A stretch of 63,829 nt of DNA, the filler included, from Bigelowiella natans CCMP2755 (taxonomy: Eukaryota; Protista; Cercozoa), in the NCBI GenBank assembly GCA_000320545.1. It is 7 parts of 7 records of this genome, joined end to end, with 100 filler letters (N's around TTAATTAATTAA, not from the genome) between each part and the next. Parts side by side here need not be neighbours in the genome. Positions count along the whole stretch, not along the records: positions 23,324 to 48,353 come from ADNK01002427.1; 6 more parts are not named here. One strand, written 5' to 3'. The notes under the pieces are model-generated. The model worked only from the letters and a program-made list of their open reading frames with translations, did no database searches and had not been told where the DNA came from. The stretch's first letter is position 1. Every line of letters begins with the position of its first letter. This document shows, one piece after another, positions 23,693 through 47,411 of the stretch. The translations under genes and the position numbers were made by a program.

Positions 23693-23987
23693 GAGTAGCC
23701 GCGAGGGATGGATCGAAGGAGGGGGAGAGAACAGGGAGTTCGTTCGACCAAGCAGCAGCGATTCGACTTGCTACGTAAAGTTAGTCTAAACGCAAGGGAT
23801 TTTGATAGTGCGACATGAATAAAACTCCGTCTTATGGCACATAAACGCCCTCACTTGAGAGCGTGCCGACACCGCAAACCCCTGACCCCCTTACCTACTT
23901 TCACTCCGTTGTCGGTGGGGACACCCAACACCCTTGCTTCTCACGTGCCTTGACCTTTTTCTTTCCTATTTGTGTTTGAAAACAAAA

Positions 23988-24176
23988 ATGGGCAAGAAGA
24001 AGCTGAAGACGGTCCTAATCAAGTTGGCAAGCAGCGCGGGTACGGGCTTCTTCTACACAACAAGAAAGAACCCACAGAAAATTAAACACAAAATAGTCCT
24101 AAAGAAGTTCGATCCCATGGTCAATCGTCATGTACTATTTGAGGAAAGGAAGCTAAAGAGTGGAAAGAAGAGATGA
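23988..24176 (+). CDS. rpl33: Nucleus-encoded mitochondrial-type ribosomal protein L33 (bL33), intronless, 62 aa
   Basis: [55 protein letters not shown] carries the IKL.S.AGTG.FY and K(Y/F)DP.V..HVLF.E signatures. Confidence 0.93.
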
Positions 24177-25601: not shown

Positions 25602-27002
25602 TCACTCCCGTGAGCTCCTAGTATTTACATGTTCTCTGAAGAATCGAAGTGCTCTTTCGTATGCGGAGAAAAAAATCAATCCTCCAAGAACATTGAACTG
25701 CACACGGGGTATCATTCCACTGAATAACACTGCTACACCATCCTCCTACGTAGTAGTGTGCATAGTAGGAGGACCAAAGAGTGATGGATAATAAAGTTAT
25801 TACTTTCCACATGTATATTATTAAGGGCGGAGCATAGAATATCACGATGATGACCTGAGCAATCTTCTTCATTGTTGCAAAGGTCCCATTGTACCGTACA
25901 CCTTTTTAAGATGTAATGATCATAAAGATTGACAACTCTCCACTAACTGCTTAAATATGGTGCACAATGCAATAGCTACCCATGATCCAACATATTTCTC
26001 AAGAGAAAGCAATACTACTTAAATAGACTCACAAGATTGACAAAAACTATTCATCATTGTACTGTTTCTTGTTGTCGTAGTCGTTGTCATCGTCATCATT
26101 ATCATACCTTTCCTATCCGTTGAACATAACATCAATCTCGTCTTTACCACATCTAATGGTGTTGTCACCGTCGCAGCAATAGCCTATTATTATTATTGTT
26201 ATTATTATTATTATCATCATTATCTCCTTGTTGTGAATGAAGGAACGAGGAAGTAGAAGATACACTGACCCCGGCAGCTGCTCCACATAGCCCGCTTTCC
26301 CAGGACGAGGGTGCGCATCTAAATCGCAGTAACAATTGACAGTTTATATTATTCATGCAAATTCATGTGTTGGTGATCATATAAGAAGAATATACCATCA
26401 TCGCCGTCGTCGTCACTATCATCATCGTCATCATCATCATCATGTACGTCATCTTCAGTTGTGGAAATAACTAGGTGATATCGTTAGATTATACGACAAA
26501 GTCAGCGGCACTCTTAGTATTAATTATATTTGGAAACAAATGATAATAAAAGCAATACCCTTTGTGCTTTATCACCAGTTGATGCTTCAATGCCTCCCAA
26601 ATAGGGTACTGATAGTAGGAAGAAGAATGTGTAGCTGCTAATCAAAATGATGATGAGTGACGATGGTGCAGTAACTATTATTGGATCGATGAGAAGGCAA
26701 TAACACTAATACTGGTGGAGAATCTAGACTGTTGTAGAAGTACTGAAACTATGCTTTCAGTGGTGTTATTGCTGACAAAGACAGAAAAGGTACATCGTCA
26801 TAATGAAACAAACGACAACCTGGATGGCGGAGTAGGGCACTTCGCGAAACACAGTTGTGAGATATCTAATCAAACCAAAGAAGAAGAAGATGATGATGAT
26901 GGCGAGGAGGGAGGCGGCACAAGGAGAAGAAGGTGGTTTCATCAAAAGACAAAAAGAAGTCAACTTGACAATGTCGTATTGCAGATCTGCGCAGCTGTTC
27001 CC

Positions 27003-27033
<31 letters not shown>

Positions 27034-27583
27034 AACTACTACTTCTACAACTACTGCTACTACCAAATTTTGTCTTTGTATCATCAGATTCTCATCGTGT
27101 GTGATATTGTTAACATCACCATCATCATCAGATTCTCATCGTGTGTGATATTGTTAACATCACCATCATCATCAGATTCTCATCGTGTGTGATATTGTTA
27201 AAATCACCATCATCATCAGATTCTCATCGTGTGTGATATTGTTAACATCACCATCATCATCAGATTCTCATCGTGTGTGATATTGTTAACATTATCATCA
27301 TCATCAGATTCTCATCGTGTGTGATATTGTTAACATTATCATCATCATCATCATCATATTGACGATGTTCTTCCTATAACTGCCTTTTACTCGGCATGAT
27401 GGTAAATGACAGCTCTCTCTCTCTCTCTCTCCTTCTCTCCACTCATCACAGTGTCATTTTCTCCTTATTACCCTCTATAAAGACCCCAGGGTCCTTCTGT
27501 TTTGATGATGGCGCGTAAGGAGGAGTAGGCAGACATGTGCAACCCTGCCTGCACCTTTAGAATATAAATAAATAAATAAATAA

Positions 27584-27623
<40 letters not shown>

Positions 27624-27811
27624 GGGGGGTCGTGTAGAGGTGGAAGAAGAGGCGGGGGAAGAAGAGAAGGAGTACCTTTTGCTTTACATTTTCCGTTGGA
27701 ACTACCATCACACACGCTACCTGTATATTAACGAAATAACGCAGGGTAAACAAACAAACCATGTATGGTGACAGTGATAATGATGACGATAATGGTTATG
27801 TTCGAAACCAG

Positions 27812-27850
<39 letters not shown>

Positions 27851-27994
27851 GAAATATATAATATTTTATCCGGGACGAATTCAGTACAGGACGTCATCTT
27901 CTTCGCTGTTTATCATTTAAAATCTAAATCTCTCGTTTCTCTCTCCAATTTAATCGCAATTATCCGACTTCCCTTCTTTTTCTAAGCTTAAGGA

Positions 27995-28026
<32 letters not shown>

Positions 28027-28897
28027 GTGCTGCTACTCTCTGCTACCGTTTCTCCCACCATCCCTGAGATCATGTGCGCCGTCGCCTAAAACAACAACGA
28101 ATTGTATGAGTTTTATTGATTATTACAATGCTGCTGCCTTGAAGCATGCAATGATGACTACAATGCCAACGATAACATACCCCGTAATGCGAGCCTCCTT
28201 CCTCTGCATCTAAAAGGTACTTTGTCGTTTCATACGCGCCGAAGAACAGGCTAGCTACGGGGGCTGATCCTATAACAGCGGCGCAAAGTCCTCTAGTGGT
28301 TGGTGAGATAAATGGAGGGGAATCAACCAATGAAGAACCAATGATGATGATGATGATCATCATGATGATGATGAGAGAATGCGCTGTCATCATGCAGTAA
28401 ACATAGGTATGATAGTAGTAGTGGTAGTAGTATTAGTAGCTTTTGTTCTTGGAACTCTTCTTTTACTTCTTTTTCTACTACTACTACTACTACTGCTACT
28501 ACTGCTGCTGCTGCTACTACCGATAAACACCTTGGAAACCACCTGCTGCACTAAAACCTAAGGATGATGATGGTGATGATGATAATGGTGTTCGTTGTGG
28601 CGGTGGTGGTGATGATAATGCGGTGATAAGTACTACAATATCGTCGTTGGACCGTGTCAATAATCAAGCATTTTAGATGAAAATTATAATCATAATCAGA
28701 AAACCACGTAGTTTGACTCATCACTATCATTATTGTCATCATCACCATCACCATCACCATCACGACAACAAAACCACAAGCAGCATGCACACCCACCCAC
28801 CATGACCTTTCGATGATTGTAAACGTGTTTTAATAGTATCTAGCGGAAAGAGCATCGTATCCACACATATCCCTGCTACTCCACCAGCAAATAAGGC
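25602..28897 (-). CDS. Mitochondrial carrier unit B (SAM carrier / SLC25A26-PET8-like)
   Basis: All three carrier repeats are present across exons: [27 protein letters not shown]; [19 protein letters not shown]; [19 protein letters not shown]. Also [28 protein letters not shown] and [23 protein letters not shown]; TGA at 25602-25604. Confidence 0.92.
27081..27344. repeat. Intronic minisatellite, 44 bp x 6
   Basis: Unit tcatcagattctcatcgtgtgtgatattgttaacatcaccatca, near-identical abutting copies with no spacers. Confidence 0.93.
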
Positions 28898-29098
28898 CTA
28901 ATACAGAAGAAAAGAGTCATCATTAGGTTTATTTAACAGTTGGTGAGTAGGGTAGATGGCAATAATCACAACACTAATTATAGTGTGATAGTAGTTCGCT
29001 ATAGACATAAGCATATATATGTCCGACAAACGTAGAAAATCTCACATCAAAGCTATGTAGCAATAGGGAATATATACACTTTTCTGCTTTTCTGGTAC

Positions 29099-29132
29099 CT
29101 CAAGAATCGTTGTGTGCTTCATCTTTGAGCAA

Positions 29133-29163
<31 letters not shown>

Positions 29164-29320
29164 GTGATAATGCCGTTGATGAGGTGGAATTATCGTTGGA
29201 ATACATTCTTTTCTCATTTTTCTGCTCCTTTCCCCCCCTCTTCAAAATCCCTCCCTCTGCTCTGCCACGAGATGCATAAAGATCAACATCTGCAGCACTA
29301 TTGCTGGTAGTGTGATTGAG
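29099..29320 (-). CDS. 222-nt phase-0 linker exon between carrier units A and B
   Basis: Acceptor tcctcag|CTC at 29320 and donor GAG|gtacc at 29099 enclose 74 stop-free codons (LNHTTSNSAADVDLYASRGR...SKMKHTTILE). Confidence 0.65.
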
Positions 29321-29354
29321 CTGAGGAAGACAACAAAGTAAAGCTATAATATGA

Positions 29355-29385
<31 letters not shown>

Positions 29386-29551
29386 CCCTAAGAGGAAATG
29401 AGTTGAAATGAAATAACTTGAGGCGAGTGAAAGCTATAATGGTGGTTAGATAGCTGTTGTAGCATCATCACCAACTACATATTTATACCACGCATATATT
29501 GACTTAATCAACGTGATATTCATCATCATCGTCGTTGTCGTAATCATTAAC

Positions 29552-30125
29552 CTTGGTTGTCTCGTGCTGCTGCTGTAGTACACTTGTCTTCTTCTTCCCC
29601 GTAACAAACGCCTTTTCCACCAGCGACAAGGAGAAGTCGTAAGCCGAGAAGAAAATCATTCCTATTGAATGAAATGCTCGATATCATTCCCAGAGCAGAG
29701 TGCAGCATATTCATGAAATTTGAACGATATGATGAAGCACAAGAAGTAGAGGGAGGAGTAGGACAAAGTCCAGCGAAACCCGAGCGATGAGAGATGTAAT
29801 ATGACTCATCGTCATCATCATCATCACCAAAGGTACTTGATAATAACATTATGCATACAACCCCCAACAAAGCACAACTGAATCCTTGGAACGAATCCGG
29901 AGAACAGCCCTGTAATACCCTGATGTACGCGGTACAGTGGTAGCAGTAGCAGCGAAGCGCCAACAGCAATCACAACAAGAATAAGAGGAGGAAAAATAAT
30001 GAGAGAGTCTAGTGCATAGTAACTACGATGCACGAGTATGGTAAGAGTGGTTGATGGGGGTATTTTGTTGGTAAAGGAGGCCTTTTCTAGAACAAGTAGT
30101 TTGCAGTATTTTGCATACATGCTTC

Positions 30126-30162
<37 letters not shown>

Positions 30163-30556
30163 TAAAACATTAGTAGCAGAGCAGGAGTAGGAGGAGTACC
30201 CCCCCCTCCTTACTACCTCTTTCTTGAGAATAGAAGCAAACGCTCTTAGAGTCGAGGCGTCACGTGGGGCATCTACAAATGAAGAAATGGTGATGAGAAG
30301 AGAAGGAGAAGGAGAAGGAGGAGGAGGAGGAGGAGGAGGACAGCAGCACACAATGAGCATGTTGATATCACCGTTTTTCGCAGCAGCCATCACCAAACAA
30401 TGCAATACATGGTGTTTGCTACTACTACTACTACTACTATGACTACTACTACTACCTCCAATCATTTGTCGGGTCTTCAAAACATCGATCGGTGTCGTTA
30501 TTGCCGCTGAAAGCTACCAACGGTTACATATAATACAACAGTAGCAGCATATCTAA

Positions 30557-30599
<43 letters not shown>

Positions 30600-31020
30600 G
30601 CAGCAACACTGCTATTTCCTTATATTCATAACAGTGCTCAAAGTAGCGCTATCATTAAAATCTTAGAATTCTACTACCGCGCCTGCAAGAGAGCCGCATA
30701 ATCCACTTTCCCATGGACTCAAACGACGAGAAGAAGAAGACGATGACGACGATGACGATGATGATGATGATGAGTAGTATATCTGCAACCGTCTAAGTAG
30801 AAATCAATAGCAAATAAAGGAGATCTGAATAAGCAGCGTGTGGTATTTGATATAAGGGGGGGGGGGGGGGGGGGAGGATAAGGAGAAAAGAAGAGGACAG
30901 GGTGACCAATAGGGATGTGGATATCGATTATGTGTAGTAACGTGGTTATATTGGAGACACGTGCATCTATTTGCTACTTCCCTTGTTATCACTGTTATTG
31001 TTGTTGTTGTTGTTGTAAAG

Positions 31021-31051
<31 letters not shown>

Positions 31052-31547
31052 CGTTTCAGTTCTTCCCACACTGTGAACTGTACGACGGAAAAAGGCTAAA
31101 GAGCACCACACACACACACATACACACAACACACACACACACAAAGTTATGAAATAATATCATTTGAATGAGCGGAAGAAACCATCGTTGTACTACTACC
31201 ATTTCTCGTAGCACTGTGGACTGAAATCCGACGAAGTAGCCCCTCCACCCCTACAATCAATGTGCTGTGTGCGTGCATGTGTGTGTGTGTGTGTGTGTGC
31301 CGTTGTTAATGTTGTTCTCCTACTCTCCCGTCATTTCCCCTTCTGATGGTTATCATCATAAATGTTTGAATCCTTTGTTTTTAAGAGACTGTATAAAGTC
31401 GATGATTATTGAGTCACCTGTGTTCTTGATATCCCTGTAATAGCAGCTAGTGTGTGCTGATAAAGGCCTATGAGAAGAAGCAGCATCACAAATGTTACTT
31501 TAACTGCAACCGCTCATGTAGTACACACACACACACACACACACACA

Positions 31548-31584
<37 letters not shown>

Positions 31585-32311
31585 ATATACATATATACCA
31601 GCCTGCACTTTCTGCTTTATATTATCCGCTGGGACTCGAGCAAGGCATGATGTTACTGCGCCCATCTGAGAATAAGAAGAAGAAGAAGAAGAAGAAGAAG
31701 GGGATTGTCGTGATAGATGGCATCAAAACAAGAACAAAGTTGTTGTCCACCATTCCTACTTGCTCTCACCACCATGTTTGTTATCGTTTGTCCTCGTTTT
31801 ACTACCGATCCTGCCAACATCTGTGACGTAAGATCGCCGTAACCCCTTTCGCCTAAGCATATCTGAGAACAAAAATATAATAATGATATAGTAATAATAA
31901 TAACGATGACGATGATGAACTGATAATTATAATCAACACTATCATTCATTCAATGTACATGAAATGGGAACAATATATGATTTTAGCAGTCGTAGCTCAA
32001 GTAGTTATTATCGAGATAGTAGTAGTATTAGTAGTAGTAGTATGTGCTACAAACAATGGAACCACTTCTGTCAAATCCTACTGATATATAACTACTAAAC
32101 AAGGATGCTCAGATGATGCAATGACGTGCTGAATGATGAAGAAGGATATGTTGTTGTTTTGGCCCTGCCTTGGACATCTCGTAGACTCCGAAGAATAGCG
32201 CCGCATTGGGGGAAGACCTAGAGAAATTATCATTTGAGTTGTATAAATGATGATGAACCTTGTTTGTATTTATCACCATAAATGCATGCTGCCTCAATAC
32301 ATAATTATCAT

Positions 32312-32353
<42 letters not shown>

Positions 32354-32878
32354 CATATATTTCCACCATTTGATGAACAAGGACTTCCTCTTACTACCCA
32401 AGCATGGCTGCAAAGAGCCCGGAGTAAAGGTTTCGGAACCCCCCAGCAGCTCTGAAACTTTGGAAGGAGAGTACATCATCATATGGCAATGAAGAAGCAG
32501 ACAAAGCAGGAAGAGAAGAGAAATAAGAAATAAGGTGAGGGAAATCAAAATAAAGAGGATAATTATAATGAGGGCTATCATTGATCTCATCATCCGTTTT
32601 TGCATTGTTTGATCTTCATAGCCTACTTCTACTACTGCTAATGATACATCGCATCATCATCCTCGTATTATTAGCAACTACCCGTTTTTACTCTGAAGCC
32701 TTGTCTTCATGGTATCAACAGGGAAAAGTATCTAAAAGAACAACGCGGATTTGCTATAATTCAGAGTCAAGTAGGAAATAATAATCAAGTTCATTACCCT
32801 AATGATTTTCCATGAAATTATGGTTGGAAGTTTATACACACACATGCACATACAGATGTGCGATGGTTGGCAGTTTAT

Positions 32879-32918
<40 letters not shown>

Positions 32919-33067
32919 GCGAACGCACATGGTCAATACACAATATTATATTTGATATTTATATTAAGAGTAGGGAGAATGGCATGAGGAAATATTATCG
33001 GATCAACAAGACGGCAGTCTATATGTAAGTTGTGCGCTGCGATGATATCTGTAGCGTGCGCGTGACA

Positions 33068-33114
<47 letters not shown>

Positions 33115-33345
33115 TATGATTATCCAATACTCAGTACCGCGTCAACTGCCATCCCAGCAATACCCCCTGACAGCAGCGTGAAAATATCATATCATCGATG
33201 GGTGAGATGGGGGAAATGGATGGCGCACGCGCATACGGAAAGCTAGGTATTAAGCTACTACTATGTATGATTCATAGTTCAGCTACCTGCGAGCAAGGCT
33301 GGAAACAAACCTACGTCGTCATTCCTAGTACTGCTTTCCAGATCT
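29552..33345 (-). CDS. Mitochondrial carrier unit A (SAM carrier-like), paralogous to unit B
   Basis: Exons give LFPALLAG-GIAGMAVDAVL-FPVDTMKTRLQ; FRAAGGFRNLYSGLFAAMLG-SSPNAALFFGVYEMSK; SCLARVPADNIKQKVQAG; LSAAITTPIDVLKTRQM; FSGFVPRIQLCFVG-GMIFFSAYDF. Confidence 0.92.
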
Positions 33346-33420
33346 GAGCTGAAAATGAGTAGTACCGCTTGAATTCTTCGAAACTGCTACTACTACCACC
33401 ACCACCACTACTACTACTAT

Positions 33421-33491
<71 letters not shown>

Positions 33492-33537
33492 GTAATAATA
33501 ATCATAATAATAATCAGCTGACGTAGCTGAAACACTC

Positions 33538-35995
33538 GGAAGAATGTGAATAATGGTCATACTTGTTCCTCCCGCCCTTTGATCCCGGTCCCAGCTTCTG
33601 ATTTCCCTCCTCCATGATAGCCAATTCGAATGGCCCTCTGAGACCAAAGCAGATGCAGTAGCTCGCAGCCTCCTCTGTCTGCGCTGCCCCCCCCCCTTCT
33701 TCTAATCCGTGCACGTAGCCGAACGATGTTTTTTCTTTGATAAATGGCCTGGATTCTATAGACTGCGTCACGGATTTGCAAGCAGTTCTGTTTAAATCTC
33801 CAGCAATTCGCTTACCGGCATTTTTATTAGGAAAATATAAAAATACTGTGTCGGACGATGGATATCACCTTTGTCTCGTTGTCTTTTCCATAATTTTATC
33901 CTGATTTATATCTTAATCCCCCCCCCCCACTGATCATAACCGTTGAGGCAACTGATCACACTTCCCGCCTCCCTCTTTCCGATTGCACTGTCCTCGCATG
34001 AGGATCGGAAGTCCATGTAATACAAAACTTGAAGGCATACTGCAATTCCATCTTCAATGGTCTCTATAATCGCCCCTCTTGATCATATGCAGGTACCCTC
34101 GTGGCGTTAATCTTCCTCGCTTTCGCTCAAGGGGTAATCGCAGTATTTGTCGCACAGCTTTGCCGCCTGATAACAGCAACAATGTTTGTACAGGTTTGGC
34201 AAGATGGAAATGTAGTACGAGGGAATCTCGAGGTATTGTGAATTTTGGTTCGGTTGGTAGTAAAAAGGGAACATCAATGAGTGGCCATCATCATAACTTT
34301 CAGGCGTCAGAGAGTGGCCATCATCATAACTTTCAGGCGTCAGATGTTCCTCAGAGGCCCAAAACCTACGACAATTGTCTAGTCACTATGATAACAGGGG
34401 AGAGGATAGACGTAGGATACGCCCTAGGTAGTGAAATATCTGTTAATACTTGGTGGCTCACGAAGACTGAAGAGTTTGAAAGAAACCCCTCCTCCCTCAT
34501 TTGGATCTTTTATCCCTAGGAGCGCTGACGTTGGGACATAGTTTCAGGAAACATACCAAGATGAAGCCTTCTCCTAGGTGAATGGTCACTTTTTTACCTT
34601 GAGATGCTGATATTGAAGATGTTCCTGTTATTCACAAAGCTCTTCTTACAACGCTGCTCTGTTCTTCAACAATTAAATAAATGGAAAAATCGAATTTATT
34701 CCCTATTCTTCTGAGACTAGCACGCATGGCTTTTAGATTAATTCTGATCCATGACCAAGAAGTGGGTAAGAAGACACATACCGGCCTCAAGAGCAATGCG
34801 AACATGTTGGATGTTATTAGAGACACTGGTATGTTCTTATTTCCCGGCTGCTGCTGCTGTATCCAATTGTAACCCCATCTTTCAAATTACTCAATTTTCA
34901 AGATTGATAGGTTGCATTTCCATATAAAAGGTGTTGTTTGGTTTCCAAGTGTTCTCGTTATAATATTGAAGATGTCAATTGCGTCCTCCTTCACTTATTC
35001 TTAGGGATATGGGATGAGATACGGGAAATGCCCCCATTGCCTGGAACTAATGATTCTGAGGCGATGAACAAATATGCCTCGATGCTTTTCAAACTCAATG
35101 CATGGCGTCTGGATGATTGCAAGAGGGTAGGAGTCGGACTAAAGCAGCGAACAAATGTTTACACGTGTTTTGTAGGGAATCTCTGTAGAAACTCAATTTT
35201 TGAGCTGATCCAAGTTGTTCGTCGATCTTCGTCATTAGCCTTCTGAATGTCTGCTGGGAAATCCTCTCTTCGTGATACTAATAATGATCATAATGATAAC
35301 AATAATAATGATAAAAGGTATTGTGGATGGGTACTGACTCTATTGTGGTGCGGAATATCGGTGAGTGAGTGAGCGTGCTGCATTTTCAAACACTTCGTCA
35401 AAATTCATGAGCTATGCCTCGAAATGTAATTATGATATATTTTCCTCGATTTTTTAGCCATATTCAGAATATACTTTCTAACTTACAGATGAGCTCTTCA
35501 CTCCTCCAAGTGCAGCCGCTGCCTTTCCGCATACGCTCTCGGTCCCTGATATGGGGTATTGGTCAATGTTCTGGCTCTCCCCCGCCTTTAATGGAGGTTG
35601 GCAATAATGATCCATGAAGAACTCATTGTTGATAAGAAGGGGAAGAGAGAGCAAGAGTTAGTTTGTTCAAATATTTTCAACTCCTCACAATTTATGATGG
35701 GGTATTTAAGGCACGATGAATAGCACTAAACAACATACTCGATAAACTGAGTAGTTGATGTTCTTGTTGTTGTTGTTCTTCTTCTTCTTCCTGCTGCTGC
35801 CGTTCCCATTATCTTCTTTTGTCGTACGATAGACTTTATCGTATTCCACCCCTCCCCCGAGGCCTTTAGAAGTCTGAATTCCCTTGCTAAGCAATCATCA
35901 GTTGAAGACTTAGTTAGGCTTCACAAGCCTCCAGGACCCATGGATCAGGGTCGTTGGAATACTAGTGATATAGTAGTAGCAGTAGTAGCAGCATC

Positions 35996-46942: not shown

Positions 46943-47411
46943 TCACCAGCTTCCCCCGTCCACTGTCAACATAACATGGATCTCATCACCATCCTCCACG
47001 TTAACCTGAAGAGGAAAGGAATTTCAAAACTTTGGTTTGAGGTTTAAAGTGAACGATTTTGAGTCACAAGTTTTAAGTGCTAGGGTTATGAATTAACTCA
47101 CATCGGCGGGCGTCTGATATTTATGAATTCGTTCTCCATCATGTAGAAACCGAAATGCGTCTTTTTCCGTCGCTCCAACTTTTGCGTAGTATGCTTCCAT
47201 CATTCTCTTGAATGGGGTTGTTTTCTTCACCTTGAAGTGGACCTCCCTTCCGTCTTGTGACGTGAACACGAGGTTCAAGTGCATAGTAGTCTTTGAATCC
47301 TGTAAAATACGAATCAGTAAGAGGATGGATTTGTAGACCGGGGTAGTCTAAAATGCGGCAAAGAGTAGTGTTTCGGCTATTCTTGTCGGAAAGAAGAACC
47401 TTTGCATCCAT
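46943..47411 (-). CDS. SUMO: SUMO-family ubiquitin-like protein (divergent), three exons
   Basis: MDAK / DSKTTMHLNLVFTSQDGREVHFKVKKTTPFKRMMEAYYAKVG...FRFLHDGERIHKYQTPAD / VNVEDGDEIHVMLTVDGG-SW*. The QDG.EV.FK.K.TT, FRF..DG.RI...TP and terminal GG signatures are present. Confidence 0.9.

Follow-up and report, generated by a model that had tools for sequence, protein, structure and literature searches.

Carriers of the mitochondrial SLC25 family are described as monomeric in a 2025 review, with the single exception of AGC1/2, which pair via an extra domain; the word 'tandem' is not used there (PMC12410006). The yeast ADP/ATP carrier has been engineered into covalent tandem dimers (Trezeguet et al. 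2000; Hatanaka et al. 1999; both as cited in PMC3732615). Here we describe a locus of the chlorarachniophyte Bigelowiella natans CCMP2755 that likely encodes two complete carriers of the S-adenosylmethionine (SAM) type, units A and B, in one polypeptide. It lies at 33560–25602 on the minus strand of the window, by which we mean the whole stretch of 63,829 nt that was analysed (assembly GCA_000320545.1), and consists of two intron-rich units of the SLC25A26/Sam5 type arranged head to tail.

An SLC25 carrier has both its termini in the intermembrane space, and a head-to-tail fusion of two carriers is therefore topologically possible. The engineered ADP/ATP carrier tandems are reportedly functional in vivo, as the titles of the studies have it. 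No natural tandem, double or fused SLC25 carrier was described in the literature that was searched in full text, and the architecture of the chlorarachniophyte double does not seem to have been described by the carrier field. The fused proteins of the relatives are already in public databases, where they are unnamed.

Fused carrier ORFs in related chlorarachniophytes

When a stop-free piece of unit A (window 29827–30513, minus strand) served as the query, one protein was returned, P0001 (367 amino acids, aa), on a transcript-like JGI contig, L001. This contig carried an orthologue of A and then, 191 nt on and in another frame, an orthologue of B, with a TAG directly before its residues ALFAGG. 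A search with the B frame of L001 gave P0002 on contig L002, a single open reading frame (ORF) that covers the final repeat of A, a linker of 50 aa and the whole of B. L002 was open from 704 to 1888 and broken only by a retained intron of 67 nt, at a site where the window also has an intron.

Three full-length products were obtained. P0377 (623 aa, Norrisiella sphaerica MMETSP0113) corresponded to L001 341–1408 joined to 1636–2436, and P0380 (585 aa, MMETSP, marked 'complete') to L002 minus its 67-nt intron. P0294 (592 aa) came from Amorphochlora amoebiformis, for which the NCBI genome annotation (gene GAB5353835.1, 26 exons over 10.7 kb, in L021) and the MMETSP/JGI transcript L022 gave an identical product. 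Pfam found six Mito_carr repeats in each of the three proteins. In all three (3/3), A was not followed by a stop and B was not preceded by a methionine. A search of related transcriptomes for double carriers had been proposed in the preliminary description of this locus; it yielded fused ORFs in three chlorarachniophytes, and these support the covalent six-repeat tandem that had been suggested there.

The exons of the window were close to these proteins in sequence. By tblastn, the A exons were 70–87% identical to Norrisiella A and the B exons 75–100% identical to Norrisiella B. The identities of L002 and Amorphochlora to the window exons were similar, and Norrisiella was the closest relative of the window among those found. 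A partial B orthologue was labelled Lotharella globosa, so that the clade is that of the chlorarachniophytes. The linker ended in T-x-x-E directly before ALFAGG in every case: PTVPE in Norrisiella (..PTVPE), TTVSE in L002 (..CKHRHQTTVSE), PTIPE in Amorphochlora (..PPTIPE) and TTILE in the window.

At the DNA level, the acceptor region before ALFAGG was homologous between the window and L001 1623–1635, in the retained intron of Norrisiella. When the linker regions were aligned, homology was found only in the last helix of A and in the stretch from the acceptor into B, and the linker itself was not alignable. Many intron positions of the window coincided with those of the Amorphochlora genomic gene, within an overlap of a few bases; these positions were taken from blastn blocks and are approximate. 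A tblastx comparison of the Amorphochlora flanks with the window for synteny gave low-complexity matches only. A metagenome scan with the Norrisiella B frame, in a collection that holds no MMETSP-derived contigs, found only distant carriers (at most 54% identity).

Since three chlorarachniophyte orthologues carry A, linker and B in one ORF, we consider it likely that the genome of B. natans also contains a fused A–linker–B gene.

The A–B boundary of L001 contained a GT-AG intron of 227 nt (1409–1635), which held the only stop codon of unit A. When spliced, the transcript encodes the 623-aa double carrier; when the intron is retained, it encodes the 367-aa A-only carrier and B is untranslatable. 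Retention of this intron may serve to switch from the double to the single form, or may be splicing noise. An alternative acceptor leaving a 17-nt remnant of L001, together with a mini-exon encoding HITCCE, had been considered for this boundary and was ruled out, as P0377 shows the true junction to be 1408/1636.

Transcriptome contigs can hold read-through artefacts, and this counts against reading the relatives' transcripts as evidence of fusion. The fused transcripts might be non-functional read-through or conjoined products, or assembly chimeras, with single carriers as the real proteins. Intron retention and aberrant isoforms were indeed evident, L001 and L002 each keeping an intron, and tandem duplicates on the same strand are a classic source of merged models. 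However, the frame was open in three species across a linker that is not conserved, which speaks against an artefact. In the mature mRNAs A was given no stop and B no start, so that B would be untranslatable without A, and independent assemblies and a genome annotation yielded the same product. We regard such an artefact as highly improbable.

The reading frame across the locus

The locus is about 40% G+C, with very small exons and with introns packed with microsatellites. Its exons were assembled manually, with the sequence itself and tblastn matches of the relatives' proteins in the window as guides, and the frame was then checked by script. Searches and folding made use of single exons, stop-free pieces and the relatives' proteins, and the joined model was put through the script's frame check only.

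The full path comprised 29 exons, from an ATG at 33560 to a TGA at 25604–25602, and gave 1995 nt or 664 codons with no internal stop. Unit A took up exons A1–A16 (318 codons), the linker one exon of 74 codons, and unit B exons B1–B12 (272 codons). The introns, 27 GT-AG and one GC-AG, were 86–606 nt each. Stop-free exon pieces of both units were matched by Pfam Mito_carr (PF00153).

The junction between units A and B

In the preliminary description, unit A was joined to unit B by a phase-0 donor at 29552 (ACCAAG/gttaat), a stop-free exon of 222 nt at 29320–29099 in phase 0 at both ends, and a phase-0 acceptor at 28897 (tattag/GCC). All of these were found in the sequence, with tactttgttgtcttcctcag before the exon and gtacca after it. 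The start that had been offered for a separate B, MKHTTILE, corresponded to an ATG at 29122–29120. The in-frame stop expected near 29500 was a TAA at 29506–29504, to which the unspliced exon A16 reads (…TTKVNDYDNDDDDEYHVD and stop). A second in-frame ATG was present in the linker exon at 29206–29204. The linker introns of the joined model were of typical length with canonical ends.

Several observations weigh against a fused gene here. Stop-free windows of 222 nt in a given frame are common in this DNA (5–6% of all), and 114 frame-preserving, stop-free combinations of donor and acceptor connect A to B. The earlier argument had been that the whole path reads in frame and that the gap of about 650 bp, with its microsatellites, looks like intron. 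The frame is indeed open over the 664 codons, but neither the path nor the microsatellite-rich gap was significant by itself. With a matrix built on the other introns of the gene, the donor at 29552 scored a weak 1.7, where most other introns scored 5–10, and the in-frame donors at 29582 and 29621 scored equal to it. Only the acceptors were strong at the junction, those at 29320 (8.5) and 28897 (9.0) being among the best of the gene. Given the rival donors and a path at chance level, both the donor of A and the position at which the linker exon begins are tentative.

The remaining points against fusion concern what lies between the units. An in-frame stop follows A and in-frame ATGs (29206, 29122) precede B, unlike in the three relatives, and TATAAATA (29487–29480) stands between the stop of A and those ATGs. 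The linker of the window is about 98 aa, versus 50–55 aa in the relatives. Neither a transcript nor a protein of the window's species was found; the last word search for one spanned 208–661 aa, and the model has 664. A scan of the A–B gap for bacterial-type promoters and terminators gave nothing above shuffled sequences, and this type of scan is irrelevant for a eukaryote. The sequence of the window alone does not decide between fused and split genes.

These features would be expected if the ancestral fusion had undergone secondary fission, leaving two separate tandem genes in this genome. A would then end at TAA 29506–29504 and be polyadenylated; B would have its own promoter in a gap of about 300–380 bp, start at ATG 29206 or 29122 and be spliced from 29099 to 28897. 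The stop, the two ATGs, TATAAATA, the weak donor at 29552 and an in-frame path expected by chance would all be accounted for, and MKHTTILE followed by ALFAGG resembles the normal short N-terminus of a carrier (cf. P0004). On the other hand, all three relatives (3/3), including Norrisiella as the closest found, have a fused ORF with no methionine before B. The frame is also open over the 38–66 codons that precede the candidate ATGs, 29320 is a strong acceptor, and one in-frame ATG is expected by chance in a linker of 74 codons. The stop of A lies within a stretch bounded by usable splice sites, just as the A stop of Norrisiella lies in an intron that is spliced out. The earlier alternative of a B gene starting at MKHTTILE would need a recent gene fission. 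We consider fission unlikely, and a single fused gene remains our preferred reading.

Residues, fold and targeting of the two halves

The SLC25 signature Px[DE]xx[KR] was present three times in unit A of the window (PVDTMKTR, PADNIKQK and PIDVLKTR). It was also kept in unit B, where the third copy is PLDVVKTR, and in the relatives. In 107 single SAM carriers, 82 alignment columns reach a conservation of 90% or more; of these, 70–71 were kept by the A halves and 77 by the B halves. The residues kept in both halves include all three signature motifs, R-E on helix 4 and P-R on helix 6, and the window exons carried the same conserved residues as the halves of the relatives. From these residues both halves look functional.

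The two halves were about 48% identical to each other. In helix 3 they had changed reciprocally at two positions that single SAM carriers conserve as Glu and Arg: all A halves had E99>A with Arg106 kept, and all B halves had R106>V with the Glu kept (mouse numbering). The window exons A8 and B4/B5 followed the same pattern at 99/106. The two diverged halves of the preliminary description were thus recovered in both the identity and the reciprocal changes. Of the substrate-contact residues, whose comparison was proposed there, the R-E contact pair of helix 4 was found in both halves.

An AlphaFold2 model of P0377, built on an alignment of 142 sequences, contained two six-helix bundles with a predicted local distance difference test score (pLDDT) above 90. 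The linker (321–344) and the N-terminus had pLDDT below 50 and were disordered. The predicted template modelling score was 0.60, which gives no confident packing between the bundles. In Foldseek, each bundle separately matched UCP1 and ADP/ATP carriers best, and no solved chain spanned both bundles. The best named matches of the halves were SAM carriers of animals, fungi and stramenopiles. No signal peptide was visible at the N-termini of the relatives' proteins, which would argue against plastid targeting.

In the SLC25 family one chain has three repeats and six helices. The orthologues have six repeats in one chain, as does the in-frame model of the window. Judged by its sequence and predicted fold, the product of the locus is a carrier, but its architecture would not be the canonical one.

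The predicted product

Read as a fusion, 33560–25602 (minus strand) would be one gene of about 29 small exons, and its main productive mRNA would give a protein of about 600–660 aa. This protein would begin with a complete SAM-carrier unit, A, of three repeats and six helices, followed by a disordered linker of low conservation and by a second complete SAM-carrier unit, B. Because both termini of a carrier lie in the intermembrane space, the linker would lie there too, and the two halves would form two separate six-helix barrels. By carrier topology, 12 helices in total would be placed in the mitochondrial inner membrane. Each barrel would have its own path for SAM and S-adenosylhomocysteine (SAH), as in an exchanger of the SAM/SAH type. 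B would be made only as part of the fusion, with its translation start supplied by A. Retention of the A–B boundary intron would give an A-only protein, as seen for Norrisiella, and its equivalent in the window would end at TAA 29506–29504.

The fused product might instead be a polyprotein precursor whose linker is cut after translation or import, leaving two six-helix carriers. Fusion would then provide equal synthesis and co-delivery. The linker is spacer-like, being fast-evolving, disordered in the model and variable in length (50–98 aa), and the conserved T-x-x-E before ALFAGG could be the site of processing. Dinoflagellates and euglenids are known to make plastid proteins as polyprotein precursors, which would be a parallel. 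However, we know of no protease site for, or precedent of, cleavage of an SLC25 precursor. T-x-x-E may instead be part of the cap at the N-terminal end of helix 1 in unit B, or reflect a splice-site constraint, and the engineered covalent ADP/ATP carrier tandems are said to function uncleaved. A cleaved precursor thus appears rather unlikely.

A more specific form of the fused reading is that the chlorarachniophytes, this genome included, make an uncleaved 12-helix hetero-tandem, the barrels of which are functionally interdependent or specialised. We put this forward tentatively, as a possibility less probable than not. The reciprocal loss at 99/106 hints at the possibility that one half is tuned to the import of SAM and its partner to SAH or to some other substrate related to methylation.

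Origin of the fusion and other double carriers

For a tree, 17 double proteins were each divided into their two halves and combined with 38 single SAM carriers. The A halves of the chlorarachniophytes formed one clade (support 100) and their B halves another (98); the two clades were sisters (98) and branched within the canonical single SAM carriers. This agrees with a tandem duplication specific to the lineage that gave rise to A and B, whose joining in one frame would predate the divergence of these species. In the proposed course of events, a canonical SAM carrier was duplicated in tandem in the chlorarachniophyte lineage and would have been kept as one reading frame since.

Double carriers were also found elsewhere. 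When P0001 was used for a profile search among 1.84 billion representatives, the 11 best matches were all further double proteins, 543–657 aa long and drawn from MMETSP, Logan, ENA and EukProt. Several of them were marked complete, and one was from the dinoflagellate Gymnodinium smaydae. The representative library gave no chlorarachniophyte double.

A second double family resembling SAM carriers (P0121–P0130 and P0295–P0299, 570–680 aa) had two full carrier domains and came from protist transcriptomes; one member, P0128, was labelled Gymnodinium smaydae, a dinoflagellate. It kept 58–67 of the 82 SAM-carrier columns. Its N halves and C halves fell in clades of their own, outside the canonical SAM carriers and apart from the chlorarachniophyte halves. 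This points to an independent origin of the Gymnodinium-type doubles, probably one older than the chlorarachniophyte fusion.

Two cestode models, P0131 (Echinococcus canadensis, 543 aa) and P0300 (Rodentolepis nana, 606 aa), were also double, the first half being partly degenerate. They come from annotation only and lie outside the tree, and could be real fusions or merged tandem genes. In P0003 (414 aa, ENA), a SAM carrier, about 140 residues are duplicated internally, so that repeats 1 and 2 occur twice. This protein differs from the full tandem fusions and probably reflects either a partial duplication or an artefact of assembly.

Exons and introns of the model

The start of the model was tentative. 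Exon A1 (33523–33560; MTIIHILPSVSA; all exons and introns are on the minus strand), with ATG 33560–33558, was the sole frame-compatible ATG exon found upstream. Its donor (TAC/gtcagc) scored poorly, and it has no orthologue support because N-termini are not conserved.

With Norrisiella A as the tblastn query, and with the frame check, we placed exons A2 (33287–33348; DDVGLFPALLAG, the start of helix 1 of unit A), A3 (33138–33166; GIAGMAVDA), A8 (31599–31665; MGAVTSCLARVPADNIKQKVQA, with the motif of repeat 2), A9 (31418–31467; GLYQHTLAAITGISRTQ) and A14 (30217–30272; DAPRDASTLRAFASILKKE). The relatives' proteins served in the same way for A5 (32398–32457; FRAAGGFRNLYSGLFAAMLG), A12 (30678–30792; RLQIYY, a poly-Ser run and RRLSPWESGLCGSLAGA) and A15 (29862–29919; GITGLFSGFVPRIQLCFVG). 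A6 (32169–32217; SSPNAALFFGVYEMSK) and A16 (29552–29661; GMIFFSAYDFSLSLVEKAFVTGKKKTSVLQQQHETTK, the last helix of unit A and the start of the linker) were likewise placed by tblastn and the frame check.

Identity to Norrisiella A was 82% for A4 (32682–32731; ILFPVDTMKTRLQSKNG, the signature motif of repeat 1) and 76% for A10 (31200–31250; GWRGYFVGFQSTVLREM, the R-E contact pair of helix 4). A11 (31052–31095; PFSVVQFTVWEELKR) gave 87% identity in tblastn and was placed with the frame check. A13 (30456–30513; LSAAITTPIDVLKTRQMIG, the motif of repeat 3) matched Pfam Mito_carr and was 89% identical to L002. A7 (31806–31862; ICLGERGYGDLTSQMLAGS) agreed with Norrisiella in its length and in ..TSQMLAGS (..STQMIAST in Norrisiella). 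The intron between A6 and A7 starts with the lone GC donor of the gene (32167–32168; AAG/gcaggg), which was needed to stay in frame with A7; the other 27 introns are GT-AG.

The proposed intron between A16 and the linker exon (29321–29551, 231 nt) holds TAA 29506–29504, TATAAATA at 29487–29480 and a (GAT)n microsatellite. The linker exon (29099–29320, 74 codons) is of low complexity and ends in ..CSKMKHTTILE, followed by gtacca. The intron between it and B1 (28898–29098, 201 nt) is conserved in position with the 227-nt intron of Norrisiella, which is spliced in P0377.

B1 (28807–28897) encodes helix 1 and the motif of repeat 1 of unit B; it matched Mito_carr (E 2e-8) and was 77–87% identical to the relatives. 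Placement by tblastn with Norrisiella B and the frame check was obtained for B2 (28521–28557), B4 (28047–28085), B6 (27472–27554), B7 (26820–26865, with the R-E contact pair), B8 (26559–26608), B9 (26270–26318) and B11 (25855–25901). B3 (28181–28292) was 76% identical to Norrisiella B and was also checked for frame. B5 (27676–27720), with the motif of repeat 2 and a V where single carriers have R, was 100% identical to Norrisiella B. B10 (26108–26183), with the motif of repeat 3, was supported by Pfam and by 86% identity in tblastn, and B12 (25602–25745), ending with the stop TGA 25604–25602, by Pfam, tblastn and the frame check.

Simple repeats were frequent in the gene. About one-third of its donors read G/GTAGTA and led straight into (GTA)n microsatellites. 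The longest intron, the 606 nt between B6 and B7, contained 6.2 copies of a 44-bp unit with 98% identity (27080–27350). Exon A12 had a run of about 15 Ser at 30730–30775, encoded by a TCA/TCG microsatellite and located where a loop connects helices 4 and 5 in unit A; this run was not present in Norrisiella, L002 or Amorphochlora. Another poly-Ser run was found in the linker exon at 29133–29172.

Adjoining the carrier locus, a stop-free piece on the plus strand (23886–24173) matched Ribosomal_L33 (Pfam E 1e-12) and is probably an organellar-type bL33 gene. At 47096–47347, on the minus strand, the window contained an exon with a SUMO-like ubiquitin fold (Rad60-SLD, E 3e-13).

Discussion

If the fusion is real, the chlorarachniophyte double would be a new SLC25 architecture, conserved in its lineage, that evolved at least twice in the SAM-carrier subfamily. 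This subfamily would then repeatedly gain something from covalent pairing. The protein would be a natural counterpart of the engineered ADP/ATP carrier tandems used in the debate on monomer versus dimer. It would also offer a system for subfunctionalisation of two transport paths at a fixed 1:1 stoichiometry. A question for carrier import is posed as well, namely how the TIM22 pathway would handle a 12-helix substrate; to our knowledge, no such substrate has been described for this pathway. For annotation, the warning is that six-repeat Mito_carr models in protists are not to be split automatically into two genes.

Among known systems, the single SAM carriers (SLC25A26, yeast Sam5p/Pet8p and plant SAMC1-2) were the closest in sequence. 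Each half was about 45–55% identical to named single SAM carriers and was nested among them. Like these, each half has three Mito_carr repeats, intact Px[DE]xx[KR] motifs, the R-E of helix 4, the P-R of helix 6 and a matching fold. Unlike them, the polypeptide would contain two complete carriers (six repeats, about 12 helices) with halves about 48% identical, and the halves carry the reciprocal changes E99>A (A) and R106>V (B).

The engineered ADP/ATP carrier tandems are likewise two six-helix carriers fused head to tail. Those were made in the laboratory from identical units with short linkers, whereas the chlorarachniophyte double would be natural and heteromeric, with a linker of 50–100 aa, and conserved in its lineage. 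In the aspartate/glutamate carriers AGC1/2 (aralar, citrin), two carrier domains are also held together, and this is the only accepted case (PMC12410006). Their dimer is non-covalent, formed via an N-terminal EF-hand domain with three repeats per chain, whereas here there would be one chain and no extra domain.

Conjoined or read-through tandem duplicates are similar in that paralogues on the same strand, here 650 bp apart, can be joined in frame. In contrast to such products, the relatives' mature mRNAs neither end A with a stop nor provide B with a start of its own, and three species preserve the frame. The Gymnodinium-type doubles share two full carrier domains in one ORF, in independent transcriptome assemblies. 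The chlorarachniophyte halves, however, are not sister to theirs and are nested in the canonical SAM carriers.

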